DNA of 64,000 bases, taken from positions 62,001-126,000 of IMG/VR virus record IMGVR_UViG_3300033143_001962; one strand, given 5' to 3'. Below, piece by piece: positions 6,865 through 53,240 of this stretch. A model generated the notes under the pieces. The model worked only from the letters and a program-made list of their open reading frames with translations. It did no database searches and was not told the DNA's origin. The stretch's first letter is position 1, and each line of letters opens with the position of its first letter. Position numbers and translations under genes: made by a program.

Positions 6865-7094
6865 TGAGCAGATTTGAATTCAGACCGTTTACGCCAATGG
6901 ACACGTTCCAACCTGGGTTTACGCATTTAGTAAAAGTGTTCAACTGGCTTGATGCCAACGACATTAGTTACATAACCAGAGAGCAAATAGATAAAACAAA
7001 TTTCGAACCGTATACACAAATAGCAATGTCTAGTAGAAGTGCTACGCTATTTGCATTAAAGTGGAGTAATTTAATTAATGTCTTTGCCAAATAA
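6864..7094 (+). CDS. Small hypothetical protein, likely the same '..LFALKW' family
   Basis: Fills the gap between RS4 and RS5 with overlaps; ends SATLFALKWS. Confidence 0.55.
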   Translation: MSRFEFRPFTPMDTFQPGFTHLVKVFNWLDANDISYITREQIDKTNFEPYTQIAMSSRSATLFALKWSNLINVFAK

Positions 7095-9319: not shown

Positions 9320-9641
9320 ACTAACTGACAACCAACAAGAAGTATGGGATAGATTAAAACACACTGGAATTGACTCTGAAATCGCAGCTAGTCTACAACG
9401 CCGCCTACAATTTTTTACTGGCATGTCGAATAATGCAGCAACTCAGATTGAGGTAGAGCAAAGTCTGTGCGAATCACTAAATCATTATCTCGATAATCGA
9501 GAAATTTATGATTATACAGTCGTGTGCGACGCAGGTAACAACACCGTCCATGACGTTACTACTAATAGGTTAAATGTTGATGTATTTATTAAGCCTACTA
9601 GAGCAGCAGATATCATAAACATAAACTTGACGATAAAATAA
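9312..9641 (+). CDS. Stand-alone contractile tail sheath C-terminal-domain-like protein
   Basis: IYDYTVVCDAGNNTVHDVTTNRLNVDVFIKPTRAADIININL matches the T4 gp18-type C-terminal pattern (Y-x-Y-R-VVCD-x-x-NNT...F-I-x-P-x-R...I-x-L-N-F). GGAG 7 nt before ATG 9312. Confidence 0.65.
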   Translation: MHELTDNQQEVWDRLKHTGIDSEIAASLQRRLQFFTGMSNNAATQIEVEQSLCESLNHYLDNREIYDYTVVCDAGNNTVHDVTTNRLNVDVFIKPTRAADIININLTIK

Positions 9642-12002: not shown

Positions 12003-12100
12003 AATGGCTTAAAAAGATGTGGAACAAAATTAAATTAGAACGACGTTATCGCAAAAAGCTTAAAGAGCTTAAGAAACGCGATCCGTTTATCTATAAATGA
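11999..12100 (+). CDS. 33-aa highly basic peptide MKWLKKMWNKIKLERRYRKKLKELKKRDPFIYK
   Basis: Translated by hand; ATGA overlaps at both ends. Below the ORF-track cut-off. Confidence 0.75.
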   Translation: MKWLKKMWNKIKLERRYRKKLKELKKRDPFIYK

Positions 12101-12276
12101 CACACGCACAAGAAACAAACCCGTGCGTTGGCTGCATGATTATCGATGAATGTACTGGTTACTGTACTGGTTGCTTTCGATCAGAATCTGAAATAGGATC
12201 TTGGGATAGCTTTACTGACATTACCCGCAATTCAATATTAAGTGTACTAGGAGTACGAAGAAGAGACAATGGCTAA
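12097..12276 (+). CDS. DUF1289-like Cys-rich small protein (59 aa)
   Basis: MTHAQETNPCVGCMIIDECTGYCTGCFRSESEIGSWDSFTDITRNSIL fits the PC-x-G...C-x-GC-x-R-x-x-x-EI-x-x-W pattern; overlaps both neighbours. Confidence 0.7.
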   Translation: MTHAQETNPCVGCMIIDECTGYCTGCFRSESEIGSWDSFTDITRNSILSVLGVRRRDNG

Positions 12277-13777: not shown

Positions 13778-15397
13778 ATGTTCGATATATTTACATTGAC
13801 ATCTTATCCGGGTGCTACTAAGGTAAATAGCATCAATGAAGCGCAAGAACTCACAAAGACTAGGTACTGCTGGATACTTGATGATCGCAATGATTACAGT
13901 AACTTTGATTTCCTATGGGAGCCGGCACCCTGGGAGGCTAATCAGTCGCACGTCTGGCCTAGCCAACATCAAGAGAACGGCGGTACTAGATTAGTACCTA
14001 AGCAAAAGTACACAGATACAAATTACCACACTGAAGAAATACCCAGAACACGCTTTCCTAAAATTGTACACTTAGATCACGGCAATGGCTTTGACCCATG
14101 GCTCGCACCTACAACCGGAATGTACTTGCTAGAACGATCACGTTTTATTAACGACTACTTAGGTACATTGAAACGTGTAGTACAGAAGAATATTGATTGT
14201 GGTCACTTATGGGTGATAAGCTCAGTTTGTAGTTATAGAGATTTTGACTTTACGTGGCATCCTAGTGAATGGCAACAAGATATGTTGCATGTGTTTCCTA
14301 GTAATGAACAAAAGTTTGGTGACACATTCTTAATTAACGTAGAAGACTTTTTAAAACAAAGCAAAGCCTTAGAACTGCTCGAATGGTACGACACTATTTG
14401 TTTCCAAGATACTATTGTACACCGCGCAACTCCATCTATGTACTTACATCAACACGATAATCAAGTTGACGCAATGAAGTCAGCTATTTTTCAGAAGATA
14501 GAAGACCCAAGTGAATTCAACGATCCTGTTACATTGTTTACAACTTCAATTGAAGGGTTCGACGACGGAACTATTCCTACAATTAACTTATGGCGCCCCG
14601 AGACAAGAGCTATTACTCCGTTAGACAAAGGTGCCAAGCGTGTACTTGTGCCGAGAGAAGCATTAACTGAAGTACATGATCAGTTATACGATTACAAGTA
14701 CATAGATAAAAGTCATAATGACGATTACAAGTCTTCCCCAATTGATATTGTGTTTATGAGTAACGGCGAATCATGTGCGCAAGAGAACTACGATCGATTA
14801 TGCGAAGTTGCTGACGGTTACGAGATACACTGGGTTAAAGATGTTGAAGGGCGTATTGCGTCAGCACGTGAAGCAGCCAGAGTTTCAAACACTGATTGGT
14901 TCTTTTCTGTCAATGCTAAACTTAAAGTAGATAGAGACTTTGATTGGGACTGGCAACCCGATTGTATGCAAGCCGCAAAGCATTATATATTTTATGCATA
15001 TAATCCATTAACTGATGATACGTACGGACACATGGCAACTATAGCCTGGAATAAGAATTTAGTTAACACTGATACTGACTGGGGCTTAGACTTTACAATG
15101 AGTCACGAGCACGAAGTTATTCCTGTACTCTCGGGAGAAGCTATATACGCAGACGAACCTTGGGCAGCATGGAGAACAGCATTCCGTGAAGTTATAAAGT
15201 TACAGTTAGATGATGGTATGGAATCGTCTTTGCACTTAAAGAAGTGGCTCGCTGCGAATGATGAATGGACAGCTAAAGGTGCTAATGATGCAGTTGATTT
15301 CTTTAAGACTTCAAACGGTGATATGGATAAGTTGTTGTTAAGCTTTGACTGGGAATGGTTAGCTAAGTACTATTATATTAAATATATAACGTACTAG
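13778..15397 (+). CDS. Glycosyltransferase-like (GT-A) protein with three internal repeats
   Basis: DIVFMSNGE..AQENY, WRTAFREVIKL; repeated FDF-x-W-x-P...HV(W/F)PS unit. Confidence 0.55.
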   Translation: MFDIFTLTSYPGATKVNSINEAQELTKTRYCWILDDRNDYSNFDFLWEPAPWEANQSHVWPSQHQENGGTRLVPKQKYTDTNYHTEEIPRTRFPKIVHLDHGNGFDPWLAPTTGMYLLERSRFINDYLGTLKRVVQKNIDCGHLWVISSVCSYRDFDFTWHPSEWQQDMLHVFPSNEQKFGDTFLINVEDFLKQSKALELLEWYDTICFQDTIVHRATPSMYLHQHDNQVDAMKSAIFQKIEDPSEFNDPVTLFTTSIEGFDDGTIPTINLWRPETRAITPLDKGAKRVLVPREALTEVHDQLYDYKYIDKSHNDDYKSSPIDIVFMSNGESCAQENYDRLCEVADGYEIHWVKDVEGRIASAREAARVSNTDWFFSVNAKLKVDRDFDWDWQPDCMQAAKHYIFYAYNPLTDDTYGHMATIAWNKNLVNTDTDWGLDFTMSHEHEVIPVLSGEAIYADEPWAAWRTAFREVIKLQLDDGMESSLHLKKWLAANDEWTAKGANDAVDFFKTSNGDMDKLLLSFDWEWLAKYYYIKYITY

Positions 15398-21389: not shown

Positions 21390-21447
21390 ATTATATGGTA
21401 TATTGTAGTAAAGGTCAACCTTTATTTTGCGCTGTAAGTCATTGATT
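21390..21447 (-). promoter_or_regulatory. Sigma70-type early promoter with upstream IHF-consensus site
   Basis: TTGACC-17-TATAAT (21418 to 21390); AATCAATGACTTA (= WATCAANNNNTTR) at 21435-21447. Confidence 0.8.
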
Positions 21448-28435: not shown

Positions 28436-29701
28436 ATGCAAGACGAATACTTTCCAATACAAACCAAAACGGCATGTAAGTCAAAATGGGCATGGAGCAC
28501 AATTTGGTTATATGATGGTACCACGGCGAGTTGTCACAGATGCGATAGGCACGAGATTGATCTCAATGACTTTGATAACTTCCACAACACACCAGACAAA
28601 ATAGTCCAACGTAAAATGATGCTAAACGGCATGTGGCCTGTTACAGGCGGGTGTGACTACTGTCAAAAAGTAGAAGACGCCGGCGGGCATAGTGATAGAC
28701 AATTCCAAAATACCATACCGAACCAAACACCTCCTGAATTGTTTATTGACCATACTGCTACGCATGTCACTCCTACTATACTTGAAATATTCTTATCTAA
28801 TACTTGTAATCTTCAATGTATCTATTGCCGCCCTGCTAACAGTTCAAAAATTGAAGCAGAATTTAATAAGCACGGCCCATTTAAAGCTGGAGATATATTC
28901 ACACGTGGCAAAGCTGCCCATACACCTAAAGTTGATCAAGAATTACTTAAAGAAAAGTTCTGGGATTGGATGGCACGTAACTCTAATTCACTCAGACGCT
29001 TTCATATTCTAGGTGGTGAGCCTTTGTTTATGAAAGACTTTCAACTGTGTCTAGACCACTGGGACAAATATCCTAACCCTTTAGTAGAAGTAAACGTAGT
29101 ATCAAACTTATCAATCCCGCATGAACGTTTTAAAGAGTACATTGATTACATTAAAACTCTTGTCAAGAATAAAAAGATTAAACGCTTTGATATGACAGCA
29201 AGTATTGACTGCTGGGGCAAAGCACAAGAATACGTGCGAATGGGATTAGATTTAGAATTATTTGAAAAGAACATGAATTACCTTCTAGCTCAAGATGAAA
29301 GCTGGTTGCGTATAAATGTCAATCAGACAGTAGGCGCACTAACTATAAAAACAATGCCTGCGCTGATTGTTAAAATTAACGAATGGAAGAACCAACGTAC
29401 TGAGTTCGGCCATTACTTCCAAGTACTAGATACACCAGCATTGATGCGTCCTACTATATTTGCCCCGGGATTCTTCCAGGAAGACTTTGAAGCTATTATG
29501 TCCTTGATGAAAAATGAAACGTGGGATGAAAAACACGCTTATGAAATGATGCAGGGAATGATAGCACAAATAGAAAGTGAAGCTGAACGTAATTGTAACT
29601 TAGAAGCAGAACTTGTTATGTACTTAGATGAAATCGACGAGCGACGCAACACGAACTGGCACACTGCATTTCCTTGGTTGGCTAAACTAATAGGAGAGTA
29701 A
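28436..29701 (+). CDS. Radical SAM protein with N-terminal twitch/SPASM-like domain (RS7)
   Basis: CNLQCIYC, ILGGEP; ACKSKW..SCHR, CDYCQ. Confidence 0.9.
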   Translation: MQDEYFPIQTKTACKSKWAWSTIWLYDGTTASCHRCDRHEIDLNDFDNFHNTPDKIVQRKMMLNGMWPVTGGCDYCQKVEDAGGHSDRQFQNTIPNQTPPELFIDHTATHVTPTILEIFLSNTCNLQCIYCRPANSSKIEAEFNKHGPFKAGDIFTRGKAAHTPKVDQELLKEKFWDWMARNSNSLRRFHILGGEPLFMKDFQLCLDHWDKYPNPLVEVNVVSNLSIPHERFKEYIDYIKTLVKNKKIKRFDMTASIDCWGKAQEYVRMGLDLELFEKNMNYLLAQDESWLRINVNQTVGALTIKTMPALIVKINEWKNQRTEFGHYFQVLDTPALMRPTIFAPGFFQEDFEAIMSLMKNETWDEKHAYEMMQGMIAQIESEAERNCNLEAELVMYLDEIDERRNTNWHTAFPWLAKLIGE

Positions 29702-35958: not shown

Positions 35959-37020
35959 TTACCAAGTAGCAACGGCAGCTCTGTGCCAAATATCAGCTAC
36001 ACCGTCTGTCCAATTAGTATGGCATAGAAAAACATACGTTCCATTGGTTGCAATTTGACCAGCTAAATCGCCAACAACGCCCTTAGCAGTACCAGGTGAG
36101 CCAACTCTGACAACCGTACCTAGCCCACTATTAATGTTTATGGTAGCCGCAATAAGTGGGGAAACACTATCGTCTGCATAAGCTTTGATGCTTTGTTGTG
36201 TTGCAAGTGCTGTATCACTATCACTAGTCATGCCATTTTCGTCGAATATATCAGTAACTGATGTACCGCTAAGTGCGACAGTAGTTGCATTAACAGTCGC
36301 AGCATGGAAGTTATTGAACTTGTTAGTTACAAGCCCTAAGTCGAGTCCTAAGTTTGCAACAGGGTACACACCACTGTCGTCTACTTTTAATTTGTTTGTT
36401 TTTACACTACCTACGTCTACTGACATTACAATAGCATTAGTTACATCATCAATCTCGACTACATTTAAGTTGTCTGGACTTGCTATTAACTCGACAAATG
36501 TACCGTCGGTACCATCATGTGCATGTGTAATTCTAATATCGTCTGCATAAGCTTTGATGCTTTGTTGTGTTACGAGTGCAGTAGCACTATCAGCAACCAT
36601 TGTGTCGTCGTCTAATATACCTGTAACAGTTGCACCAGATGCAAGTACAAGATTGGCTAGTGTAGCAGTACCTGCAATGTGTAAGTTCTTAAACTTATTA
36701 GCAACGGTACCTAAGTCTATATCGTTAGTTAGTGATGGAACCAGTGTGCCGTTTGTAATTCTAATTTGTTCAGTTTTGACACCTGTATCGTTAACTGAGA
36801 ATTTTAATTGCCCGCCAACACCATCTACTAATATTTCGTTGTTATTAGCTAAGTCTGAGAGTACAGGTATGTACCCACCGTTGTCTCCGGAGCCATCGTG
36901 ATTATGTCCTGCTGCATTGTTAAACGCAGCTTCGATCGCTTCGTACTCGTTGTTGAAGTCGAGAGCCTCGATGAACTCGTCATCGACTCTATTGTATGAT
37001 TTTGAATATCCTGTTGCCAT
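35959..37020 (-). CDS. Tail-fibre/virion appendage-like protein with two 123-aa repeats
   Basis: N-terminal GHNHDG motif; repeated DLG...F...D.D..ALxTQQSIKAYADD; TAAATA at 37043-37048 and GGAG SD. Confidence 0.6.
   Translation of the reverse strand: MATGYSKSYNRVDDEFIEALDFNNEYEAIEAAFNNAAGHNHDGSGDNGGYIPVLSDLANNNEILVDGVGGQLKFSVNDTGVKTEQIRITNGTLVPSLTNDIDLGTVANKFKNLHIAGTATLANLVLASGATVTGILDDDTMVADSATALVTQQSIKAYADDIRITHAHDGTDGTFVELIASPDNLNVVEIDDVTNAIVMSVDVGSVKTNKLKVDDSGVYPVANLGLDLGLVTNKFNNFHAATVNATTVALSGTSVTDIFDENGMTSDSDTALATQQSIKAYADDSVSPLIAATININSGLGTVVRVGSPGTAKGVVGDLAGQIATNGTYVFLCHTNWTDGVADIWHRAAVATW
36168..36571. repeat. 35-nt exact direct repeat, period 369 nt
   Basis: TATCGTCTGCATAAGCTTTGATGCTTTGTTGTGTT at 36168-36202 and 36537-36571. 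Confidence 0.9.
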
Positions 37021-37917: not shown

Positions 37918-38703
37918 TCATTGAACAAAGTCCTTAGCAGTGTACATTCTTTCATCCGCTAAGTGAATTAACTTATCAATTGAACTAGACTCTGTGCTGA
38001 TAGCAACACCGGCACTACATGAAATATTTAAAATATTATTCTCGTAATGTAGTGGCTCGCGCACCCGCATCGTTAACTTGTCACGTACTGTTTCTACATT
38101 TTCTGTGTTGTTAGGAAGTACAACAATAAACTCATCGCCACCATAACGACAAAATAAATCACCATCTCTTAAGACATTTGCGATACGCTTGGCAATAGTT
38201 TTAAGTACGAAGTCACCAGTGCTGTGACCGTGTGTGTCGTTGATTGCTTTAAACTTATTAAGGTCTATAAACATCAATGAAAATTCATCTGTGATTTTAT
38301 TCATTGCGCTAAAGAACTGATCGCGTGTTAGTGCATCAGTTAATGTATCAGTTAATGCATAAGCACCTGGGTCATGAAATACTGCATACGATAAACTGTC
38401 ATTGAGTTTATGACATTGTAACCGTAGCTTCACTCGCGCCCCTTCTTCTGAAATACCGATAGCGGGCGCATGGCTAGTGTTGCAAGTGTCACACTCGTTA
38501 CATGCAAACTTACCAACTGATCCAGTATTACAAAATAAGTAATCGTTTAGACTAGACCCGATTGCACGTACATTATCGACACCAAGCAAGTTAGCACCGT
38601 ATTCATTGATGTCTACAATATTTTGGTCAATATCAAAAACAACAATACCTAGCGGGCATGTGTTTACAATTTGCTTAATGGCATCAATGTCAAGTTGCTG
38701 CAT
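37918..38703 (-). CDS. PAS-GGDEF diguanylate cyclase
   Basis: D-x-LT, FIDLNKFKAINDTHGH..GD..L, intact RYGGDEF and RxxD I-site (RDGD, 5 residues upstream); N-terminal PAS-like region (GIVVFD..NIVDIN). Start moved to ATG 38703. Confidence 0.92.
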   Translation of the reverse strand: MQQLDIDAIKQIVNTCPLGIVVFDIDQNIVDINEYGANLLGVDNVRAIGSSLNDYLFCNTGSVGKFACNECDTCNTSHAPAIGISEEGARVKLRLQCHKLNDSLSYAVFHDPGAYALTDTLTDALTRDQFFSAMNKITDEFSLMFIDLNKFKAINDTHGHSTGDFVLKTIAKRIANVLRDGDLFCRYGGDEFIVVLPNNTENVETVRDKLTMRVREPLHYENNILNISCSAGVAISTESSSIDKLIHLADERMYTAKDFVQ

Positions 38704-38935
38704 TATCGTTTTCTCTGTTAATGAAGAACATTTTGTACGAGACGATGTTGTCTCCGCGCGTTGCGTAGCCTGTGTGTTTGTCAAGTTTTTTCCATTTTAT
38801 TTTTGTTGTTTCGGGAAAGGTTTCAAGGTAGTGTTCACATGCGGTGATAGCTGATTGCTTGCTAGACACAACCGCAAGTGGTTCTGGATGAACCTCTTGG
38901 TCTTCGTGTCCTGACATTATCACATACGCTCTCAT
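38690..38935 (-). CDS. Hypothetical protein coupled to the DGC
   Basis: 81 aa; its stop overlaps the DGC start. Confidence 0.65.
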   Translation of the reverse strand: MRAYVIMSGHEDQEVHPEPLAVVSSKQSAITACEHYLETFPETTKIKWKKLDKHTGYATRGDNIVSYKMFFINRENDNAAT

Positions 38936-38964
38936 TGTATCACCTGTTTATTAACTGTTAACTA

Positions 38965-39024
38965 AGTATAGCAGACCCGTAACAAAAGGTCAACCTTTTA
39001 ATCACTGTATAAATCAATGACTTA
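38965..39024 (-). promoter_or_regulatory. Sigma70-type promoter with IHF-consensus site (opposite orientation)
   Basis: TTGACC-17-TATACT (38993 to 38965); AATCAATGACTTA at 39012-39024. Confidence 0.8.
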
Positions 39025-39921
39025 AAAGGTGTATTTTAGCTTTACGCCGTATAATTCCCATTTATATGGGTAAATCCCACCTATATCGAGTAAATCGTAC
39101 AAGAATTGTACTTGTAAGTCCTTATTAATGTTGTTACGCACTAGGACCTTAAAGGTCACTTCCGGAGATTTGTCTGCTGAATTGATTTGTTGTGTGCCAA
39201 CCATAAGTTTACTATCAACGTACCACTTGTTGCTGTACTTCTTTCTATATCCTACACCAATTAGCTCATCTTGCAGGTGCTCGGGTGAGAAGTACTCCTT
39301 AGGATTAAAGCTTGCGTCTTTAATTTTAAGTAATGCTTGAGCACTTAGCCCGTACTTGATAGGAACAATAACTTTTAATTTAGTTATGTCTTTAACATTA
39401 CCATCACTGAAGTTTTGTGTAGTGTACGCACCAACTAGCGTTGTATCTAGGAATGATGTATTGTAATCCCCTGCAACTCCAATTGACGTAAACGTAATCT
39501 TAGAGTTAATTGCATTAACACTGTCTACAATATTCTTCTCAGCACTTGCAGATACATTGCCTTTGCCTAACTTGCTTGATACATTAATAGTGCCACCAAA
39601 TGTAGACCAGTTACTGCCGAAGTAGTTATGAACCGTACCGTTAACTTGTACACCCTTGCTTAAACGTTTGAATGTACCTTGAACTTTGTTAAGTGACACT
39701 GACTTCAATGTATCACTGGCTGTGAACACACCACTGTTAATACCGTAGATGTAATGTCCTGCTTTTCTTGAGTACCCGCCAGTAAACAATCTAGTATCGT
39801 TGCCATCACTGTCAGTTGTTATTTCGTGCTCGAAGTTTACTTCGTCTGCTAGTGCTAAGTCAGTGATAAGAATTAGTAAAAATACTATCGCTGCTAACAC
39901 AAATCCTTGAGCAATTTTCAT
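39022..39921 (-). CDS. Outer-membrane beta-barrel protein (PgaA/YaiO-porin-like role inferred)
   Basis: Signal peptide ending ALA; alternating amphipathic strands; C-terminal YGVKLKYTF with terminal Phe. Confidence 0.7.
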   Translation of the reverse strand: MKIAQGFVLAAIVFLLILITDLALADEVNFEHEITTDSDGNDTRLFTGGYSRKAGHYIYGINSGVFTASDTLKSVSLNKVQGTFKRLSKGVQVNGTVHNYFGSNWSTFGGTINVSSKLGKGNVSASAEKNIVDSVNAINSKITFTSIGVAGDYNTSFLDTTLVGAYTTQNFSDGNVKDITKLKVIVPIKYGLSAQALLKIKDASFNPKEYFSPEHLQDELIGVGYRKKYSNKWYVDSKLMVGTQQINSADKSPEVTFKVLVRNNINKDLQVQFLYDLLDIGGIYPYKWELYGVKLKYTF

Positions 39922-41249
39922 TTAGTTCCCCATGTCTTTTTCGTGTTAAATACTTCACTTAAATATCCTGTAACAGCCGCCGGAGCAACTAGTACTTGGT
40001 ACACAATCATGTACCATATGAACCCAATTGGGTTACGTCTCACTTTTAATCCCATCTTTTCAAAGATGCGTGTTTGATTAATATAGAATATCCAGTTACT
40101 TAAAAATACAATAGGTAACATCATTAAAATGTAAACGCCTACAATAGTATCGTACCCAAACAACAACGATGCTAATGCACCAGGTATAAAGATAAACAAA
40201 TAAAATGTATCAACAAACGGGATGAACATGTTAATCCAAACAAATGGAGTATTCATCTTAATATCTGTAATAGTCCTAGGATGTATTTTAAATGCTTCTA
40301 TAAGTCCACGTGACCAACGCTTGCGCTGATGGAAGAATGTTTTATAATCTTCTGGAACATTTGTAAATGCTATTGCAGTTTCGTCGTACCCTATTCTATA
40401 TCCCTTTGCACGTAGAGCCCAAGTCAAGACAATATCTTCACCTACAGTGTTTGGCCATCCGCCTACTTCATTTAATGCCGAAGTGCGGTATATTGAAAAT
40501 GCGCCTTGGGCAACTAACGTACCTTGGAATAAACTTTGTACACGCTTCACGACAGAAATGCCATGGAAGTAATCCCACTCTTGTATCTTTGTAAGCCAGT
40601 TGTGTCTACTGTTACGTACAAGTGGTGTACCTGCTACTGCCGCAGTGTTCTCCGGACCAAGTACAATGTTACATACGATATTGTTGATAGCATCTTTGTA
40701 CAAGTAAGTATCTGCGTCTATTGTAATAACGTATTCGTCATCAGTTAACGCAAGTCCGCGGAGTAATGCGTGAGCCTTGCCTACATTTTCTTCTAGCATT
40801 AACGTGTGTATTGCTAAGTTATCGCGTGTGTGCTGAGTTGCTGCTATCTGCGCGTTCTCTACGGTAGCATCCTTTGATCCATCATCAATTACAATTACAT
40901 TTAGTTTCCCGCCGTACTCTTGTTTAGCAACAGACTCAATAGTAGCTTCTATACTTTCTTCTTCATTGTATGCGGCAATTAGAATAGTTATGTCAGGATA
41001 TTCCTCAAGCTCGCCTTTAGTGTATTCTGGCCGCTTGTCCATTAACAGCCCTGTCATTATAAAGACGTTTGCAAAGCCTGGAACAAATGCTAAGAAAAAT
41101 ACTACAACCCAAGCTGCATAAGGAACCCAAAATGCAAATAGTACTTTAAGTTCTTCTACCCAAGGTAGTAGAATCATCCAGCTAATTACTAGCCAGAACG
41201 ATCCCATAAGTGTGCAAATTGCGAGTTTCCCTTTTACTGGTATGTACAT
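39918..41249 (-). CDS. Processive family-2 glycosyltransferase (PgaC/IcaA-like glycan synthase)
   Basis: IAAYNEE, IDDGS, GKA, IDADT, GEDI, QRKRW (D,D,D,QxxRW); TM helices at both ends. Confidence 0.92.
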   Translation of the reverse strand: MYIPVKGKLAICTLMGSFWLVISWMILLPWVEELKVLFAFWVPYAAWVVVFFLAFVPGFANVFIMTGLLMDKRPEYTKGELEEYPDITILIAAYNEEESIEATIESVAKQEYGGKLNVIVIDDGSKDATVENAQIAATQHTRDNLAIHTLMLEENVGKAHALLRGLALTDDEYVITIDADTYLYKDAINNIVCNIVLGPENTAAVAGTPLVRNSRHNWLTKIQEWDYFHGISVVKRVQSLFQGTLVAQGAFSIYRTSALNEVGGWPNTVGEDIVLTWALRAKGYRIGYDETAIAFTNVPEDYKTFFHQRKRWSRGLIEAFKIHPRTITDIKMNTPFVWINMFIPFVDTFYLFIFIPGALASLLFGYDTIVGVYILMMLPIVFLSNWIFYINQTRIFEKMGLKVRRNPIGFIWYMIVYQVLVAPAAVTGYLSEVFNTKKTWGTK

Positions 41250-41260
41250 TTAAAATCCGT

Positions 41261-41791
41261 TTAATCTTTGTGGTCATCAGGTACGTTAAGCCTGTCGTAT
41301 GTAGTGAACTTACCAGACTTGATGTCTTGGTAGTTGATGGGCTTACCACCTGTTAGCTCAACACAAACGTTAACATACCTTTCATCCTTAACACCAGTTG
41401 AGTGGGTATGTCCGTGTATAACTGGCCTGCCCCACAGTTCGCTTTCGTGAATTGGAAAGTGGCTAAGCCAATGCTTTTTGTATTTAACCGGTCCGATGAT
41501 ATCGTCAAATATTTCTAAGTACTCACTTGCAGAGCGTTGATCGTGATTGCCCATTAGCAGTATTTTAGTACCTGGTAATCCCTTAATGTGTGTTAGATCA
41601 AATCCAACGTCACCTAAGATGTAAATCTTGTCACGCTTGTTAACTGTGTCATTCCACAGATCGTAAATCATTTCATCGTGTTCTTCAATTGTTTTAATTC
41701 CGCCCATCGCTTTCGATCGTGCGTAATCATGGAACTCTAGTACCCTAGCGTGTCCTAAGTGTAAGTCACTGTTAAAATATACTTGACTCAT
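41261..41791 (-). CDS. Calcineurin-like metallophosphoesterase
   Basis: SDLHLGH, LGDV, GNHD, SHFP, HGHTH. Confidence 0.88.
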   Translation of the reverse strand: MSQVYFNSDLHLGHARVLEFHDYARSKAMGGIKTIEEHDEMIYDLWNDTVNKRDKIYILGDVGFDLTHIKGLPGTKILLMGNHDQRSASEYLEIFDDIIGPVKYKKHWLSHFPIHESELWGRPVIHGHTHSTGVKDERYVNVCVELTGGKPINYQDIKSGKFTTYDRLNVPDDHKD

Positions 41792-42008
41792 TTTTCTTCC
41801 TTTCCTCTATTTGTTTTGTAATTGAAGCCTCTGTTTGCTTCAATGCTTGGCCTCTTGCCCTGACTCTTGCTAAAACATCAGCAACGGTCTCTTCTTCTTG
41901 TATGCTACCGTCATCTAATAATTTGTACATAGTGAGGTACTGTTCCCATAAGTCTTGTAACCCAGGATGCGCCTCACGCATTAATTCATCTTTGCATTTC
42001 ATAGACAT
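41772..42008 (-). CDS. 'LR..HP.LKDAWE.Y..L.L' family, member 8
   Basis: LMREAHPGLQDLWEQYLTMYKLL. Confidence 0.75.
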   Translation of the reverse strand: MSMKCKDELMREAHPGLQDLWEQYLTMYKLLDDGSIQEEETVADVLARVRARGQALKQTEASITKQIEERKKNESSIF

Positions 42009-42289
42009 TATTCCGGATATCTTCTACTAAATGCACTTTTCATATCTGCTAATGTCTTTCGCTTTCTCGCCATAACATCCGCCAATGAATCTTTCTTAGG
42101 GTCGGGATTATCTACTAGGCACAATTTTAAAATAATGTTGTACTGTTCCCATGCATCTTTTAACGCAGGGTTAGTCTCACGCATCTTTTCTTCGTGCGAC
42201 TTACTTGGATAACTGTTTTTGACATCCTGCCGCAAAGTCATCTCTCTATAGAGATCTTTAATGTTTTCGTATAAATCATCGTCATTCAT
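42008..42289 (-). CDS. 'LR..HP.LKDAWE.Y..L.L' family, member 7
   Basis: KMRETNPALKDAWEQYNIILKL. Confidence 0.75.
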   Translation of the reverse strand: MNDDDLYENIKDLYREMTLRQDVKNSYPSKSHEEKMRETNPALKDAWEQYNIILKLCLVDNPDPKKDSLADVMARKRKTLADMKSAFSRRYPE

Positions 42290-42428
42290 TATTTTGTACC
42301 TCTTTAACTTTTACAACATACCCGCCATGATCCTCTGCCCATCGCTCAGCTCCGTACAAACTGTTAAATGCTTCTTTAACATCGCCAGTTTCATCTACAA
42401 CTAGATGCCATACCCAATTCTGGTTCAT
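42282..42428 (-). CDS. Small hypothetical protein interrupting the array
   Basis: MNQNWVWHLVVDE...; start moved to ATG 42428 (ATGA overlap). Confidence 0.6.
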   Translation of the reverse strand: MNQNWVWHLVVDETGDVKEAFNSLYGAERWAEDHGGYVVKVKEVQNNE

Positions 42429-42574
42429 GTGTGTTCTACCATCTTTAAAATAATTTGATACTTTTCCCAAGCATCTTTAAGCGCAGGATGTTCCTCACGT
42501 AACTTTTCCTCGTTAACTTCGATCCCGTTGAACGGCCCATCGTTGAGTAAATCAGCAAAATCTGTTAAGCTCAT
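42425..42574 (-). CDS. 'LR..HP.LKDAWE.Y..L.L' family, member 6 (49 aa, not in ORF track)
   Basis: MSLTDFADLLNDGPFNGIEVNEEKLREEHPALKDAWEKYQIILKMVEHT. Confidence 0.8.
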   Translation of the reverse strand: MSLTDFADLLNDGPFNGIEVNEEKLREEHPALKDAWEKYQIILKMVEHT

Positions 42575-42948
42575 CACGATGCTAACCTCGCTAATAATTT
42601 ATATTGTTCGTAAGCTTGCTTAAGCTCTTCGTCGTCCTTTATTAAGTTCTGTACTTTTTCATTAACACTGTACAAGTGCTTTGCTTCTTTACGCCACCGC
42701 CAATCATGCATTGCTAAGTAATTACCTGGGATAATAACCGGCGCCCGCATTTTTAAATGTTGCGGTAACAAGGCTTGATACGTATTGTACGTATCCTTAA
42801 TCCCTTTATTGTTAACTACTGCAATCATAGCTTTTCTGTGTGCTAGTACGATAGATTGTGCTTCAGCATCCAGTTTTCTACGTATTTCAATACGTTCTGC
42901 TTCCGTAGCTATTCTTACCCCTGTACTTGTCATTGGCTCTGCACTCAT
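42574..42948 (-). CDS. 'LR..HP.LKDAWE.Y..L.L' family, member 5
   Basis: Ends LIKDDEELKQAYEQYKLLARLAS. Confidence 0.7.
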   Translation of the reverse strand: MSAEPMTSTGVRIATEAERIEIRRKLDAEAQSIVLAHRKAMIAVVNNKGIKDTYNTYQALLPQHLKMRAPVIIPGNYLAMHDWRWRKEAKHLYSVNEKVQNLIKDDEELKQAYEQYKLLARLAS

Positions 42949-43178
42949 TTTCTATTCAACTTCAAAACAATTTGATACTTTTCCCAAGCATCTTTTACTG
43001 CTATGTTATTCTTCCTTAAGTCTAATTCTTCTAGTGCATGACCCCTTGGTGGTCGTGGAGGAGGTGGTGGCGGAACTACCCAGCTCGGGCTACGTGACGG
43101 CGGAATATAATTAGGCCCGATACTATCAGTGTACCCGCTACTAAATGCTTGTTTTAACCTGCGCCACATCTCTTTCAT
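42945..43178 (-). CDS. 'LR..HP.LKDAWE.Y..L.L' family, member 4 (Pro-rich linker)
   Basis: LDLRKNNIAVKDAWEKYQIVLKL; start moved to ATG 43178. Confidence 0.75.
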   Translation of the reverse strand: MKEMWRRLKQAFSSGYTDSIGPNYIPPSRSPSWVVPPPPPPRPPRGHALEELDLRKNNIAVKDAWEKYQIVLKLNRK

Positions 43179-43342
43179 TTGCCGTGCAACCTTAATAACA
43201 TTTGATACTTTTCCCAAGCATCTTGTAAGTCTGGATGTTTAGCCCGCGCCTCAGCCTCAGACATACGTTGTTCAATTGGCTGACTGAGCTTACGATTTCG
43301 TAAACGCTCAAGCATTTCTGTCCCTGTTTTCTTTCTAGTCAC
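43175..43342 (-). CDS. 'LR..HP.LKDAWE.Y..L.L' family, member 3 (55 aa, not in ORF track)
   Basis: GTG start; ...EAEARAKHPDLQDAWEKYQMLLRLHGK. Confidence 0.8.
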   Translation of the reverse strand: MTRKKTGTEMLERLRNRKLSQPIEQRMSEAEARAKHPDLQDAWEKYQMLLRLHGK

Positions 43343-43709
43343 TAAACCCTCTGCCCCCTCGTGGTTGCATTATTGTTGGCCTTACTGAGTTGTTAGCTAT
43401 TTTCATTTCTTCAACTTCTGCGTTCTGTGTGCTAACTAACTTCAACATCATTTCGTACTGTAACTTAGCATGTTGATACGCTTCGTATGTTTCATTTAAC
43501 CCTGGATGTTCCGCTCTTAAATTTGCTTCGACTTCACTGTAATCTTTACGTGCTGGCTTCACCCGCGGCATTGGCGGTGGACGCAGGTGGTGCGGAGCAA
43601 TCTTCATCGGGTCATAACCTGATTTTGTAAACAAGCTTTTAAACTCTTCCCAGAACCCTGGGGTATGTATATCTCGTCCGCCTGGCGGATTAGGTGGTAA
43701 TTGTCCCAT
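43335..43709 (-). CDS. 'LR..HP.LKDAWE.Y..L.L' family, member 2 (Pro-rich)
   Basis: NLRAEHPGLNETYEAYQHAKLQYEMMLKL; start moved to ATG 43709. Confidence 0.7.
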   Translation of the reverse strand: MGQLPPNPPGGRDIHTPGFWEEFKSLFTKSGYDPMKIAPHHLRPPPMPRVKPARKDYSEVEANLRAEHPGLNETYEAYQHAKLQYEMMLKLVSTQNAEVEEMKIANNSVRPTIMQPRGGRGFSD

Positions 43710-43903
43710 TATTTTCTCGCTAACCTCAACACTGTTTGGTACTGTTCCCATGCATCTTTAACGGCATCGTGATTCTCACGCAAGTCTAATTCTTCAGCGA
43801 CTTCTTTACCGTCGCGTTCAGGAATGTAGTAATCGGTATTAATTTTCCATTCGTCTGATTTACGGTTATTAAAATAATCCTTAGCGTAATCGCCCCAGTT
43901 CAT
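43709..43903 (-). CDS. 'LR..HP.LKDAWE.Y..L.L' family, member 1
   Basis: LDLRENHDAVKDAWEQYQTVLRL. Confidence 0.75.
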   Translation of the reverse strand: MNWGDYAKDYFNNRKSDEWKINTDYYIPERDGKEVAEELDLRENHDAVKDAWEQYQTVLRLARK

Positions 43904-44111
43904 TAGTCAACCCACTCTACGTCAATCCATCTATGCACTATGTACCTGGCACCACTCTGTGGGTTAGCGTGAACGACCTCACTGTAAATTTGCCTAATAC
44001 TAACACCTTCGCTCCATCTGGTTTCACCCTGTAACGTAAGCGGGATGAACAAGAAAAGCTTATGTTTTATTCTTTTAGCACCTAACTTAGGTTCTGGTTT
44101 AGCTTTCCATC

Positions 44112-44372
44112 TCATACCGGCTTCACACTCTTAATTGAATCAAGTCTAAAACTACGCCAGCCCTTTGCGTTCACATCGTAAACTGAAAGTACTTCTAAGT
44201 TTTCTTTTTTGGGTTTAGTTTCAGCATCTTCTTTTACTACGCGAGGAGGCAATTCACTTTCTTGTAGTGTGCAAGTCATAACACGCTCATCGCCATTCTT
44301 CTTAGTGAATGTGACAACTACTGTGTCGTCTTTTAATACAGCTTGCAAGTATTTTCTATCAAAATCAGTCAT
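44112..44372 (-). CDS. WYL_2/Sm-like SH3-barrel protein
   Basis: VTFTKKNGDERVMTCTL...VYDVNAKGWRSFRLDSI. Confidence 0.75.
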   Translation of the reverse strand: MTDFDRKYLQAVLKDDTVVVTFTKKNGDERVMTCTLQESELPPRVVKEDAETKPKKENLEVLSVYDVNAKGWRSFRLDSIKSVKPV

Positions 44373-48371: not shown

Positions 48372-49808
48372 TCAGATAGCTGCATTTTCTCTTACTTCAT
48401 CAAATGTGTATTCTTTAGTAACTGTACCATTAAAGAATACTGTTTTAAGTTGAACTTCTTGGTCACCGACGTGCTCTAAACGAACAGTTCTGTAATTGCC
48501 GAAGTCGTCTTTAACTAATGTTAACCGTCCTTTCTTAGATACTTTACCAGGATCAGTCTTTGGATCTTTAAACACATCAATCCATTTGTCATCTACGAAC
48601 GCTGCACTTGCCTTCATCGCAAACTTCTGTGTGTCACGATCTAGTTGCTGCAACATGCCACCACCCATACCGTATGCTACGTTATCTGCACTAAACCCAG
48701 CATCTTCGACAGCGGTAATGATTTCTTTAATGCTGTCGTATGTAATGCCATCACCTTGTATTACACGAATGCAATCAGGAAGCACTTTGTATCCAGTGTC
48801 AGTTTCGGTAGTACCGAACTTGTCAGCTAAAATGTTTAAAACATCTACGACTACTGTAGCAGGATCACCACTGTCTGGACGTATAACAATAGTTGCACCA
48901 CTGTCGATAACTTCCTGCTTAAGCTCGCCACCCCAGAAGTTTTCCGCTGCGTTCATCATATCGTAACTATCTGATACTACTGCAACCGTTGCGCCAGGCT
49001 TAGCAAACTGCTTCAACATGTTACGCATAGCATCTATCTCACCTTCGCGTCCGCCCCAACTTGTCATTGTACTGTGTTCACTTGCTGGAATACTAAACCC
49101 AGGCATCTTGTCTTCGAAGTATTCATCACCCATAGTTAACCATTTAGCTAGTGGTTCAGCGTTGTAGTACTCCATAGCAGTTAACGCACCAGTTATGGTA
49201 TCAGTTACCATAAAGTTAACTAAGTGAGCAGCACCGCCGATACCAGCACTCTCCATGCTACTAACGCCTCGCGCTCCGAAGTCAACTAACTTGAACGGTA
49301 ACGTATTCATGTCGCCACCTGTCTTCATCAAACTAGCTGCAAGTAATTTCTTAATAGCACGAGAGTTAGTTGCGACGGTTGTTCCGTACCATACAGCACG
49401 TAACAATGCAGTTTCAACGTAACTTGTTAACCAAAAGAACTCTGGGTCAGTGTTTATAATTGTAAACAATGCATTACCTGTTGGAACAGTTGTTCCTTCT
49501 GCTACTGCTTTGATTTCAAGTGGTAAGAATCCATCACACTTAGTAACAACACGCATCCAGCCATCGTAGTTGAATGGTGTACCGTGCGCTGCCGCAAAGT
49601 CTCTGCCCATCTCAACTTCTAATTCTGTTACTTGTTTTGATAGTACATTCTTTAAGAATATTTGTAAGCCAAACATTGTAGTGTCTGGAAACTTGCCACC
49701 TCTTGATTCACCGTATGATGCGATGTAAGATGTGTTTGGTGGGTATTGTAAAAATTGCCCAAGCTTATAGCTGTCTGTGTTTAGTACTATTGATTTTAAT
49801 ATATTCAT
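48372..49808 (-). CDS. nadV: Nicotinamide phosphoribosyltransferase (NAMPT)
   Basis: LNTDSYK, LVDFGARG, ASEHS, VSDSYD, IRPDSGDP, IQGDG, GMGGG, AMK. Confidence 0.96.
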   Translation of the reverse strand: MNILKSIVLNTDSYKLGQFLQYPPNTSYIASYGESRGGKFPDTTMFGLQIFLKNVLSKQVTELEVEMGRDFAAAHGTPFNYDGWMRVVTKCDGFLPLEIKAVAEGTTVPTGNALFTIINTDPEFFWLTSYVETALLRAVWYGTTVATNSRAIKKLLAASLMKTGGDMNTLPFKLVDFGARGVSSMESAGIGGAAHLVNFMVTDTITGALTAMEYYNAEPLAKWLTMGDEYFEDKMPGFSIPASEHSTMTSWGGREGEIDAMRNMLKQFAKPGATVAVVSDSYDMMNAAENFWGGELKQEVIDSGATIVIRPDSGDPATVVVDVLNILADKFGTTETDTGYKVLPDCIRVIQGDGITYDSIKEIITAVEDAGFSADNVAYGMGGGMLQQLDRDTQKFAMKASAAFVDDKWIDVFKDPKTDPGKVSKKGRLTLVKDDFGNYRTVRLEHVGDQEVQLKTVFFNGTVTKEYTFDEVRENAAI

Positions 49809-52000: not shown

Positions 52001-53083
52001 TTAAGCCCTCCCTAACATGTTCTTAATAATTGAAAAGTGATCTTCGAACATTACACCTTGCATTTTTTCAAACTCTGCAAGTGGAACCCACTTAGCTACG
52101 GCTGCATCATCACTGCCTTTAACTTTTGGCAAATCTTGTGCATCGTCTAGTTTGAAGTAGTAAACGAATGTAAGGGTTCTACCACGTAAAGAACGATTAG
52201 GTTCATCAAAAACTTCCTTAGCTACAATGGAACCACGTAGTACTTTTTCAGCAACCTTTAATTTAGTTTCTTCTCGTAACTCACGTATAACACCGTCCTG
52301 TACCATCTCGTTAGTTTCTAAGAAGCCACCGGGCATAGCCCATAAATCCTTACCTGGCATCTGTCCACGTTGTATTAATAAGACGTGTCCGCTTTGCTCA
52401 ACTACTGCGTCAACAGTAACAAAGTTTACATCGTATGGTGCTACTGCCCAGTCTTTCTTCTTTTGGATTTCATCTTCCCACTCGCATTGCAATTCAAAGA
52501 ACGTTGGAGTTTTGATAAACTTACGTACTTGATTACCGTATGCTTGACCTGGGATAACATTGTCTGTGAATGATGCTTGATTGCTAAACATTAATTGTCT
52601 AATAGCTGTAGAATCAATTTGATCATCTTTAGCAGGGTACGCTTGCATTTCAATGAAGTCGTACTGTTTGAAGTAGTTAAGGTAATAACTACTCTTGTCT
52701 TTATCGTGTCCGATGAACGCAACTTTTACTTCACCGTCACTGCCACGCTTATCGTAGAATTTTTTACTCGCCCATACTTCTTGCTTAACTTCTTCTACCT
52801 TCTCGCCTACTTGCTTAATCCATTCATTATCATTATAAGATATGTCATTGATATCAGCGACGTTAAGATTTAAGATTTGGGCATTGGCCATAATGGCTTC
52901 TTTGCGTTCTTGGTATGTCCATGGGTTTTTTGTAGTGCGTGGTCCGTTTGCTGAACCAATTAGTACTAACACGTTGTCAGCCAAGTAATCTGCTTTCTTA
53001 AGCGTTTCTTGGTGACCTATGTGGAAAGGTTGAAACCGTCCTATATAGACGATCAGATCATATTTCTTTTGTTCTGTATTCAT
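52001..53083 (-). CDS. nadM: Bifunctional NMN adenylyltransferase / Nudix ADP-ribose pyrophosphatase
   Basis: GRFQPFHIGH (HxGH), IGSA, NPW, DSTAIR; Nudix GGF....E.....RELREET. Start moved to ATG 53083 after GGGAG. Confidence 0.95.
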   Translation of the reverse strand: MNTEQKKYDLIVYIGRFQPFHIGHQETLKKADYLADNVLVLIGSANGPRTTKNPWTYQERKEAIMANAQILNLNVADINDISYNDNEWIKQVGEKVEEVKQEVWASKKFYDKRGSDGEVKVAFIGHDKDKSSYYLNYFKQYDFIEMQAYPAKDDQIDSTAIRQLMFSNQASFTDNVIPGQAYGNQVRKFIKTPTFFELQCEWEDEIQKKKDWAVAPYDVNFVTVDAVVEQSGHVLLIQRGQMPGKDLWAMPGGFLETNEMVQDGVIRELREETKLKVAEKVLRGSIVAKEVFDEPNRSLRGRTLTFVYYFKLDDAQDLPKVKGSDDAAVAKWVPLAEFEKMQGVMFEDHFSIIKNMLGRA

Positions 53084-53240
53084 GATAGACTCCCTATTCA
53101 TGTTATAAATTTGTACAGTAGCTAGTTTCTCGCAGCCTTGTAGTGGTTTAGTATCTATAGTATACTAGCAAACCCTATAGGTCTCTCACCTATCGTAACG
53201 CTTTGAGCGCATCCTCTGCCGATCCTTACTGTTTACTTGC
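53081..53240 (-). ncRNA. Candidate structured 5' leader of the NAD operon
   Basis: About 155-nt untranslated leader with nested stems (see findings). Confidence 0.45.

Follow-up and report, generated by a model that had tools for sequence, protein, structure and literature searches.

The locus examined here lies in a 64,000-nucleotide stretch (hereafter, the window; positions 62,001 to 126,000 of IMG/VR record IMGVR_UViG_3300033143_001962) of a 250-kb phage genome and consists of four genes, all on the minus strand: a processive GT2 synthase (39918-41249, 443 aa), an outer-membrane barrel protein (39022-39921, 299 aa), a short conserved gene denoted orf81 (38690-38935, 81 aa), and a PAS-GGDEF protein (37918-38703, 261 aa). 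The observation made in an earlier note, which described the synthase, the barrel and the cyclase from the sequence alone, is confirmed, with the corrections detailed below: orf81 lies between the barrel and the cyclase, the strong promoter precedes orf81, and the cyclase most likely starts at ATG 38703.

The synthase matches Pfam Glycos_transf_2 (2.3e-26) and Chitin_synth_2 (6e-18) and contains the complete set of processive GT2 motifs, DDG122, DAD178, GED270 and QRKRW308. Its nearest characterized family is PgaC/IcaA: the best NCBIfam hit is TIGR03937, with an E-value of 5e-57 over model positions 31-396 of 407, although the score of 193.6 bits falls far below the equivalog cutoff of 422.3 bits; identity to E. 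coli PgaC is 35% (E 2e-40), and the synthase belongs to a distinct subfamily, separated in the tree from PgaC by a very long branch. The AlphaFold2 model (pLDDT 92, pTM 0.90) shows 2 N-terminal and 3 C-terminal TM helices around a GT-A domain, plus an interface helix, and ends after the fifth TM helix, with no additional C-terminal domain. The top Foldseek hits are Chlorella virus and Xenopus hyaluronan synthases, BcsA and chitin synthases. No PilZ, MshEN or PgaD-type receptor was detected, and only GT2-type Pfam domains were found. The nearest named PHROG family for the N-terminal GT2 part is GtrB-like O-antigen conversion.

The stop codon of the synthase gene and the start codon of the barrel gene overlap (aATGAa). 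The barrel protein has a signal peptide, with a single N-terminal hydrophobic segment followed by ALA|DE, and ends in KLKYTF, that is, with a C-terminal Phe. It has no direct sequence hit in Pfam, NCBIfam, PHROG or PDB. However, the AlphaFold2 model (pLDDT 96.2, pTM 0.85) is a confident 16-strand barrel, with strands starting at residue 26, right after the signal peptide, so that the predicted mature protein is barrel only and lacks the N-terminal periplasmic TPR domain through which PgaA binds PgaB and the polymer. The top Foldseek hit in PDB is the PgaA barrel, 4Y25 (E 1e-10, TM 0.73/0.75 over 292 columns), followed by BcsC and PelB. At the sequence level, the phage protein itself has no hit to Pfam PgaA_barrel (PF21197) at E<=0.01, whereas 22 of 107 family members do, with a best E-value of 9e-7 and one member (P0218) above the gathering score; the family profile compared with residues 534-681 of E. 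coli PgaA gives a probability of 76% (E 2e-5), and the two share an FSDxN motif. Distant, longer members of the family carry TPR repeats in addition to the PgaA_barrel domain, and one member is fused to a polysaccharide deacetylase domain, which ties the family to Pga-like chemistry.

The product of orf81 is a predicted soluble protein without TM segments or hits in Pfam, NCBIfam, PHROG or PADLOC, and a search of 5.8 billion proteins yielded no homolog other than that in the related phage contig, where a gene of the same length occupies the same position (40% identity). Its stop codon overlaps the cyclase ATG, suggesting translational coupling.

The PAS-GGDEF protein matches PAS_8 (26.6 bits, cutoff 21.8) and GGDEF (PF00990, 123.6 bits, cutoff 23.8; E 8e-36), has no TM segment and is predicted to be cytoplasmic. 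The open reading frame extends back to TTG 38784, but the start at ATG 38703 (MQQLDID) is more likely because it aligns with the called start of the relative. The best PDB sequence matches are active cyclases, 4URS (8e-26) and PleD. The protein contains an RxxD I-site exactly 5 residues before an intact GGDEF motif (RDGD-LFCRY-GGDEF), retained in the relative (RSTD-LFCRY-GGDEF) despite only 47% identity; the guanine-recognizing N/D pair is present in FKAINDTHGHSTGD, as read by eye, the metal-binding Asp is present, and columns D147, N155, D156, D164, G188, G189, E191 and F192 are invariant. Judging by sequence, the cyclase appears catalytically competent.

A sigma-70-type promoter (38965-38993, minus strand; TTGACC-17-TGcTATACT, with an extended -10) scores 10/12, the best site in the 5.5 kb scanned, and is predicted to drive orf81 and the cyclase. 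Its -35 and -10 blocks are invariant in the related phage contig although the rest of the spacer has diverged, and it is one of 7 similar minus-strand promoters in the window. The earlier note linked this promoter to IHF. The 13-mer just upstream, AATCAATGACTTA (39012-39024, plus strand), does fit the IHF pattern WATCAANNNNTTR, but the pattern is not enriched in the window (6 found, 6.3 expected) and the match is not conserved in the relative. Five identical copies of the 13-mer are present in the window, three of them next to AAAGGTTGACC promoters.

All four genes recur in the same order in one related phage contig, between the same phage genes (phosphoesterases, PNKP). The two contigs have diverged to synonymous saturation, with dN/dS of 0.06 for the synthase and 0.22 for the barrel, indicative of purifying selection. 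The absence of co-occurrence elsewhere had been named in advance as a condition that would refute the note's reading; given this recurrence, and same-strand GGDEF-GT2-barrel or GT2-barrel-GGDEF arrangements in Polynucleobacter, that condition does not hold.

The GT2-barrel pair is not a phage invention. It is a two-gene cassette found in at least 569 bacterial species, without PgaB or PgaD, including Geomonas, Nitrospirota, Polynucleobacter, Burkholderia, Acinetobacter, Dyella, Thauera and others, in which the synthase is about 50% identical to the phage protein, the barrel is homologous, and the gene order and overlap are the same. The GT2-then-barrel order was first seen in Geomonas and two other bacterial contigs, then in about 74 of 80 genomes and 10 of 13 IMG/VR contigs, and, under stricter criteria, in 108 surveyed loci. 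The bacterial copies are chromosomal and usually lack the orf81-PAS-GGDEF unit. The barrel is annotated as hypothetical in the one RefSeq record checked, and our searches revealed no characterized member. The cassette possibly corresponds to the "novel pga organization ... lack of pgaB and pgaD" noted in environmental bacteria by Bundalovic-Torma et al. 2020 (PMC7112194). One Acinetobacter carries a canonical pgaABCD next to the cassette, so the latter is a separate system. The pair also occurs in several other large phage contigs.

The link between c-di-GMP and the synthase is not shown. The synthase contains no recognizable receptor domain, orf81 is an orphan, and the cyclase sits in a separate transcription unit. 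PgaC/IcaA synthases require a small membrane partner (PgaD/IcaD) for activity and c-di-GMP binding. E. coli PgaD gave no phmmer hit in the window or in the cassette loci, except in the Acinetobacter locus that also holds a true pga operon, although PgaD is poorly conserved and a highly divergent analog cannot be excluded; PgaB is also absent from the window. The other phage contigs with the pair contain no GGDEF within 8 kb. In bacteria, the density of GGDEF domains within 1.5 kb of the cassette is only 2.1-fold above that in the flanks (10 against 13 domains, one-sided p=0.064), and these are concentrated in Polynucleobacter/Burkholderiales. Nevertheless, small GGDEF genes have been recruited next to the cassette independently, as same-strand neighbors in three surveyed loci (L048, L060 and L070) and in convergent or divergent orientation in others.

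The interpretation offered in the earlier note, that the phage brings a minimal switch-synthase-exporter set that coats the infected cell, is partly supported. Its comparison with PgaC and PgaA holds for the synthase family and for the predicted fold and family profile of the pore, and of its two options for the missing PgaB and PgaD, a simpler system or borrowed host parts, the former fits best because bacteria carry the same two genes as a stand-alone cassette. Kinship with NfrA/NfrB is not supported, given that E. coli NfrA, NfrB and YbcH gave no phmmer hit (E<=0.01) against any ORF in the window; nor is kinship with YaiO, for which the hhalign probability is 1.9% and there is no phmmer hit. 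Activation of this synthase by c-di-GMP is unproven, the proposed benefits (receptor masking, aggregation) remain inferences, and the lytic lifestyle presumed in the note remains an assumption.

The explanation we favor, with a probability of roughly 0.55, is that the phage carries a self-sufficient, minimal synthase-dependent exopolysaccharide machine. What the analysis shows, at the level of sequence and fold, is that the inner-membrane GT2 is a processive synthase-translocase of the PgaC/hyaluronan synthase/BcsA/chitin synthase type, that its translationally coupled partner is a 16-strand PgaA-class outer-membrane pore without the TPR arm, and that the pair is a copy of a widespread bacterial two-gene cassette lacking PgaB and PgaD. 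Everything beyond this, including expression, polymer synthesis, the identity of the product, export and c-di-GMP production, is inferred. During infection, the synthase would polymerize a host UDP-sugar, most likely UDP-GlcNAc, into a beta-linked homopolymer and push it into the periplasm; the pore, delivered by the host Sec and BAM machinery, would let the polymer out, so that the infected cell becomes coated or sticky. The orf81-cyclase unit immediately downstream, driven by its own conserved strong sigma-70-type promoter, would raise c-di-GMP, either switching the synthase on through a non-canonical site or, at the least, shifting the host to a sessile, low-motility, matrix-producing state that acts in the same direction. 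The likely pay-off is exclusion of competing phages, through masked or down-regulated receptors, or retention of the infected cell in an aggregate. As to the sugar, there are only indirect hints, namely, the Chitin_synth_2 and NodC hits and the deacetylase fusion in one family member; the mature barrel is net +5, whereas the PgaA barrel is net -11, so a cationic deacetylated PNAG is not the obvious cargo.

The more far-reaching version of this scenario is tentative but not excluded by the evidence. In this view, a jumbo phage deploys a complete, portable signal-synthase-pore circuit, in which an early-expressed PAS-sensor cyclase, perhaps tuned by orf81, makes c-di-GMP that directly gates a PgaD-independent, TPR-independent two-protein glycan secretion machine, wrapping the infected cell in a virus-specified polysaccharide. 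If so, this would be a bacterial-virus counterpart of the chlorovirus hyaluronan coat and the first functional handle on a two-gene exopolysaccharide system present in hundreds of bacterial species and in several unrelated large phages.

Among the alternatives, the one that survives best, although it is less likely than the main reading, is that these are two independent accessory modules that happen to be neighbors: the GT2-barrel pair would make and export a glycan constitutively, whereas the orf81-cyclase unit would separately rewire the host c-di-GMP network (motility, pili, the host's own matrix genes), for example, removing flagellar or pilus receptors or holding the cell in a biofilm. 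This possibility is compatible with the separate promoter, the insertion of orf81 between the modules, the phage contigs that carry the pair without a cyclase, the lack of a receptor domain, the weak GGDEF association in bacteria, and the usual two-gene composition of the bacterial cassette. However, the adjacency is conserved between two phages diverged to synonymous saturation; unrelated membrane GGDEFs have been independently recruited directly beside the cassette, on the same strand, in Polynucleobacter; and PgaCD shows that a PgaC-type synthase can be c-di-GMP-gated without any recognizable receptor domain (PMC7112194).

It is unlikely that the machine makes not a free exopolysaccharide coat but a short or membrane-anchored glycan, or that the barrel serves as a porin or as a decoy or blocked receptor, with the GT2 modifying envelope components. 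The absence of the TPR scaffold that PgaA uses to handle polymer, the difference in net charge and the GtrB-like PHROG match leave room for this reading, but the QRKRW motif, the 5 TM helices and the top structural matches to channel-forming processive synthases all argue for a translocated polymer; the best matches of the barrel are the three known exopolysaccharide secretins rather than general porins (TM 0.69-0.73 against 0.5 or less), and coupling to the GT2 is strict across bacteria. Even less likely, the GGDEF protein could act in nucleotide warfare, as a source of a decoy or competing cyclic nucleotide or as a GTP sink against host defense. GGDEF/palm-domain enzymes occur in defense and counter-defense systems, there is a weak Pfam hit to the Cas10 palm domain (E 0.0013, below its cutoff), and the same phage carries NAD-salvage genes of a kind that has been tied to counter-defense; but the canonical GTP-specific N...D pair, GGDEF motif, RxxD feedback site and PAS sensor are as in housekeeping cyclases, and there is no PADLOC hit. 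An artefact, that is, mis-assembled bacterial DNA or decaying passenger genes, is very unlikely: although the source is a metagenome-derived contig and some IMG/VR contigs that carry the pair look bacterial (for example, L015, which is nearly identical to an Acidovorax MAG), the same block lies between the same phage genes in an independent assembly, its GC content matches the rest of the window, it overlaps tightly with the flanking phage genes, and purifying selection is strong.

Of the characterized systems, the closest is PgaABCD, which makes poly-beta-1,6-GlcNAc in E. coli, is likewise synthase-dependent and is c-di-GMP-controlled; the phage GT2 has the same length, TM layout and catalytic motifs as PgaC, but the differences detailed above mean that the polymer is not established as PNAG. 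The c-di-GMP-activated NfrB/NfrA/YbcH system (PMC8669472), which makes the N4 receptor glycan, follows the same logic, a c-di-GMP-linked GT2 synthase plus an outer-membrane exporter with a phage connection, but NfrB carries a C-terminal c-di-GMP-binding domain, NfrA is a large TPR-barrel protein, and this is host-encoded receptor synthesis rather than a phage gene set. The xagABCD biofilm glycosyltransferase cluster of Xanthomonas, a four-gene PgaC-like GT2 operon distinct from pga and de-repressed in rpf (c-di-GMP phosphodiesterase pathway) mutants (PMC3609779), is a lead only; Xanthomonadales relatives (Dyella, Rhodanobacter) carry the cassette.

GGDEF genes are annotated in some phage records, for example, Escherichia phage vB_EcoM-613R3 and Bacillus phage G gp350, but these match only the GGDEF domain, at 28-43% identity over 40-60% of the protein, and none is reported next to a synthase/pore pair. 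In chloroviruses, the hyaluronan and chitin synthases (PBCV-1 A98R and relatives) are processive membrane GT2 enzymes, encoded by a large virus, that make the infected cell extrude a GlcNAc-containing polymer, a coat whose biological role is likewise debated; the host is eukaryotic, without an outer membrane and hence without a pore partner, there is no second-messenger enzyme, and sequence identity to the phage synthase is only about 18%, despite the top structural match. Finally, with respect to BcsA/BcsC (cellulose) and PelB (Pel), the barrel is structurally close to both secretins (TM 0.68-0.71) and the synthase shares the BcsA fold, but the phage locus has no PilZ domain, BcsB or TPR arm, and only two of the 107 family members hit BCSC_C, against 22 for PgaA_barrel.

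The window is part of IMG/VR contig IMGVR_UViG_3300033143_001962, which is 249,797 bp long. The window looks like phage DNA, with a uniform GC content of about 39%, long same-strand gene arrays, and genes for thymidylate synthase, a polynucleotide kinase-phosphatase (PNKP), phosphoesterases, tRNA-Thr, an HNH endonuclease and a tail-fibre-like repeat protein. No close relative was identified among GenBank phages, either at the DNA level or for marker proteins. A nucleotide search with the 5-kb region of interest and a tblastn search with the barrel protein against phages both gave no match, and the GT2 and GGDEF hits in phage records were only distant.

Four minus-strand genes occupy positions 37918-41249. 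The first encodes a 443-aa GT2 (39918-41249) that matches Pfam GT2 families and Chitin_synth_2 and carries the motifs DDG122, DAD178, GED270 and QRKRW308. The second gene, encoding a 299-aa protein (39022-39921), starts inside the GT2 stop codon (aATGAa), and its product contains one N-terminal hydrophobic segment ending in ALA|DE and terminates in KLKYTF. The following 86-nt spacer holds the best promoter-like site of the region, TTGACC-17-TATACT with an extended -10. Next comes an 81-aa ORF (38690-38935; orf81), overlooked in the earlier note, whose stop overlaps the ATG of the PAS-GGDEF gene (37918-38703). The latter encodes a 261-aa protein, in which GGDEF scores 8e-36 and PAS_8 is above its cutoff. 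The predicted cyclase contains RDGD-LFCRY-GGDEF, that is, an I-site at the canonical spacing, and aligns through the active-site region with solved active cyclases. The observation made in the earlier note, a processive GT2 overlapping a signal-peptide beta-barrel gene and followed by an intact PAS-GGDEF protein, is therefore confirmed, and the locus is richer than described, the extra gene and the shifted cyclase start being the corrections.

The note also linked the cyclase promoter to IHF, but the IHF pattern is neither enriched nor conserved, and this claim was dropped. Nevertheless, the exact 13-mer AATCAATGACTTA occurs five times in the window (15498, 21435, 24448, 39012 and 47140), and three of the copies sit 10-14 nt upstream of near-consensus promoters of the form AAAGGTTGACC-N17-TATAAT. 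Seven such promoters lie on the minus strand, at 21418, 24142, 24432, 27820, 35933, 38993 and 47014. The 13-mer may be an operator or an IHF-type site of an early-promoter class.

The only close homolog of the barrel among 5.8 billion proteins (68% identity) is encoded on a 12.8-kb ENA contig (denoted L002) that has the same gene order: GT2, barrel, an 81-aa gene, PAS-GGDEF, metallophosphoesterase, and then PNKP and Rnl2. Amino-acid identity between the two phages is 91% for the GT2, 68% for the barrel, 40% for orf81 and 47% for the cyclase. Synonymous sites are saturated or nearly so in all four genes, with dN/dS of 0.06 for the GT2 and 0.22 for the barrel; the ratio was not computable for orf81 and the cyclase because of the saturation. 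The cyclase keeps RxxD and GGDEF in both phages, and the -35 and -10 blocks of the predicted promoter are invariant in an otherwise diverged spacer. These findings exclude an assembly artefact and show that the synthase and the barrel are under purifying selection in phage genomes. In contrast, the Cys-rich stretch in the PAS domain (CNECDTC) is not conserved in the relative, so that a metal or redox site is unlikely. The two contigs differ between the metallophosphoesterase and PNKP genes, where the window encodes, among metabolic and early-type genes, a 353-aa protein (35959-37020, minus strand) with an internal duplication (…ALVTQQSIKAYADD… / …ALATQQSIKAYADD…) and weak tail or tail-fibre PHROG hits, whereas L002 has two small ORFs at this position. 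A metagenome scan and a viral scan with the cyclase found no further members of this phage lineage, and orf81 has no homolog beyond L002 and no family hit.

The phage barrel protein gave no direct hit in Pfam, NCBIfam or PHROGs, and only insignificant PDB sequence hits (E 0.48 and above), so that the family first had to be built from bacterial neighbors. The lead came from bacterial homologs of the GT2, which are about 50% identical and number in the thousands. In Geomonas, in a 3.1-Mb genome and in another contig, each GT2 is followed by an overlapping, unannotated gene encoding 293-316 aa, the products of which are homologous to the phage barrel (BLASTP 8e-10; shared VDSVxAI, SDGN and YFSP motifs; aromatic C-terminus). 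A profile search found 432 cluster representatives. Longer, more distant members carry TPR repeats plus Pfam PgaA_barrel, one is fused to a polysaccharide deacetylase domain, and a few database entries (P0152 and P0201; also P0079, P0103 and P0104) fuse the inner-membrane GT2 and the outer-membrane barrel into one polypeptide of about 750-764 aa. Such fusions are topologically odd, and might be frameshift or gene-calling artefacts at the ATGA-type overlap, or genuine fusions that need processing.

Of the 107 aligned family members, 22 individually hit PgaA_barrel, and the family profile aligns to E. coli PgaA residues 534-681 with 76% probability (E 2e-5), including a shared FSDxN motif. AlphaFold2 gives a very confident 16-strand barrel (pLDDT 96.2, pTM 0.85), for which the best PDB match is the PgaA barrel 4Y25 (E 1e-10, TM 0.73/0.75), followed by BcsC and PelB, whereas general porins score TM 0.5 or less. 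No comparable protein was found in the BFVD viral structure set (TM 0.45 or less). Thus, by predicted fold and family profile, the protein is a TPR-less member of the PgaA/BcsC/PelB class of exopolysaccharide pores. Kinship with YaiO was rejected, YaiP is only a distant GT2 (28% identity), and NfrA/B, PgaB, PgaD, YaiS and a deacetylase domain are all absent from the window.

Among characterized families, PgaC/IcaA is the best match of the synthase (5e-57), but the score is 194 bits against a 422-bit equivalog cutoff, identity to E. coli PgaC is 35% over the catalytic domain, and in a phylogenetic tree the whole family is far from PgaC. The AlphaFold2 model (pLDDT 92, pTM 0.90) shows two N-terminal and three C-terminal TM helices around a GT-A domain, with nothing else attached, and Foldseek ranks hyaluronan synthases (Chlorella virus, Xenopus), BcsA and chitin synthases first. 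By sequence and predicted structure, the protein is therefore a processive, channel-forming synthase. UDP-GlcNAc is the most likely donor, an inference that rests on the nearest relatives (PgaC, NodC and chitin-synthase profile hits) and on the deacetylase-fused family member, and that extends neither to the linkage nor, with certainty, to the sugar itself. The invariant C-terminal K-x-W-G-T-K of the family resembles the (S/T)WGT(R/K) motif of chitin and hyaluronan synthases, which we consider only a lead. The mature barrel has a net charge of +5 compared to -11 for the PgaA barrel, which argues mildly against a cationic, deacetylated PNAG cargo and fits the absence of PgaB.

To survey the distribution of the cassette, we used the synthase alignment, because the barrel alignment was too divergent for a locus search. 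A scan of one genome per species detected the synthase in at least 569 species, including Geomonas, Nitrospirota, Polynucleobacter, Burkholderia, Paraburkholderia, Acinetobacter, Dyella, Thauera, Gallionella and Legionella. The barrel follows directly in about 74 of the 80 loci kept, and in 108 loci under stricter criteria; the exceptions are truncated contigs or a more distant clade, at about 38-44% identity, that includes Firmicutes and lacks the barrel. In Acinetobacter sp. MB5 (locus L083, 710-10246), a canonical pgaA-pgaB-pgaC-pgaD operon lies immediately upstream of the cassette on the same strand, so the two are paralogous systems. RefSeq annotates the barrel as a hypothetical protein in the one record checked. 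A 2020 survey of pga operons mentions a 'novel pga organization' in environmental bacteria lacking pgaB and pgaD (PMC7112194), which may correspond to this cassette.

Thirteen further IMG/VR contigs encode the synthase, ten of them with the barrel. Several of these contigs show phage hallmarks, namely L013 (239 kb), with a ribonucleotide reductase, a dATP/dGTP diphosphohydrolase domain and a transglycosylase; L021 (323 kb), with a T4-type RNA ligase and DUF2828/DUF7788; L018, with a PurZ-like enzyme and a tail protein; and L023, with a DNA transfer protein. However, at least one contig (L015) is essentially an Acidovorax sequence. The dATP/dGTP diphosphohydrolase domain of L013 (10476-10967) and the PurZ-like adenylosuccinate-synthetase homolog of L018 (12219-13352), both from large phage contigs carrying the GT2-barrel pair, are enzymes of the kind associated with diaminopurine (Z-base) genomes. 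On the synthase tree, the viral label requires at least five changes, so the cassette has entered phages more than once. None of these other contigs has a GGDEF gene within 8 kb.

The interpretation proposed in the note, a phage-borne switch-synthase-exporter set, is only partly supported, the connection to c-di-GMP being its weak part. In favor of this connection, the cyclase neighborhood is conserved in the two phages, and small GGDEF genes lie directly beside the bacterial cassette on the same strand in Polynucleobacter (upstream in loci L048 and L070, downstream in L060); in other loci (L054, L063, L069, L085 and L105), GGDEF genes lie beside the cassette in convergent or divergent orientation. 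The same-strand and nearby Polynucleobacter-type proteins that we aligned are membrane-anchored GGDEFs unrelated to the phage PAS domain, and hence were recruited independently. However, GGDEF density within 1.5 kb of the cassette is only 2.1 times that further out (10 domains against 13; p=0.064), and the cases are phylogenetically clustered, so we treat this enrichment as suggestive rather than as evidence. Furthermore, the synthase has no PilZ, MshEN or other extra domain, PgaD is missing, orf81 is an orphan with no TM segment and no family, and the cyclase belongs to a separate predicted transcription unit. Given that PgaCD shows that a PgaC-type synthase can be gated by c-di-GMP without a recognizable receptor domain (PMC7112194), direct gating of the phage synthase is possible, but we consider it less likely than not.

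What the analysis shows, at the level of sequence and predicted fold, is a processive synthase and a PgaA-class pore that are translationally coupled, evolve under purifying selection in phage genomes and are copied from a self-sufficient bacterial two-gene system, along with a cyclase that has all catalytic and feedback residues and is preceded by its own conserved sigma-70-type promoter. The activities themselves, and the events during infection, are inferred. In this most likely mechanism, the synthase would use a host UDP-sugar to make and translocate a beta-linked homopolymer, the pore, inserted by the host Sec and BAM machinery, would export it, and the cyclase would raise c-di-GMP, either activating the synthase or shifting the host to a sessile, low-motility state. 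The infected cell would become coated or aggregated, which would hinder competing phages or keep progeny near hosts. The nearest biological parallel is the hyaluronan or chitin coat that chloroviruses impose on infected algae.

Each of the components is of a previously known type, so the finding is not categorically new. What has no counterpart in the databases and papers searched, including literature searches for phage-encoded Pga-like systems or cyclase-synthase sets that found nothing directly comparable, is the combination of a two-gene exporter lacking TPR, PgaB and PgaD, its repeated capture by large phages, and its pairing with a cyclase in one lineage. This may be the smallest Gram-negative synthase-dependent exopolysaccharide system seen so far, consisting of one synthase and one bare, predicted 16-strand pore, with no periplasmic scaffold, deacetylase or PgaD. 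The system is widespread but unannotated, and a two-gene system is an attractive model for how polymer crosses the periplasm and the outer membrane. The repeated acquisition of the cassette, with a cyclase placed beside it in one lineage, suggests that phages actively remodel the surface and the second-messenger state of the infected cell, which bears on superinfection exclusion, biofilm ecology and phage-therapy outcomes. The locus also provides a compact, testable case for whether PgaC-type synthases can sense c-di-GMP without PgaD.

Just upstream of the phosphoesterase/GT2 genes lies a tandem array of at least eight small ORFs (41772-44115, minus strand; 50-138 aa), each with a motif like HPxLKDAWE(K/Q)YQxxLKL, usually near the C-terminus; five match a strict pattern and three more match by eye. 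This array looks like a paralogous family of small early proteins. A cluster of four or five radical-SAM-domain ORFs and a NodU/Nol-type carbamoyltransferase (12269-13777, PHROG 1601, E 5e-98), plus further large ORFs, at 86-15397 (plus strand) and 28436-29701, could represent a nucleic-acid hypermodification pathway or a peptide/glycan tailoring pathway. Finally, two minus-strand ORFs (48372-49808 and 52001-53101) encode nicotinamide phosphoribosyltransferase and an NMN adenylyltransferase/Nudix protein, together forming an NAD+ salvage pair of a kind that phages use to counter NAD-depleting defence systems.
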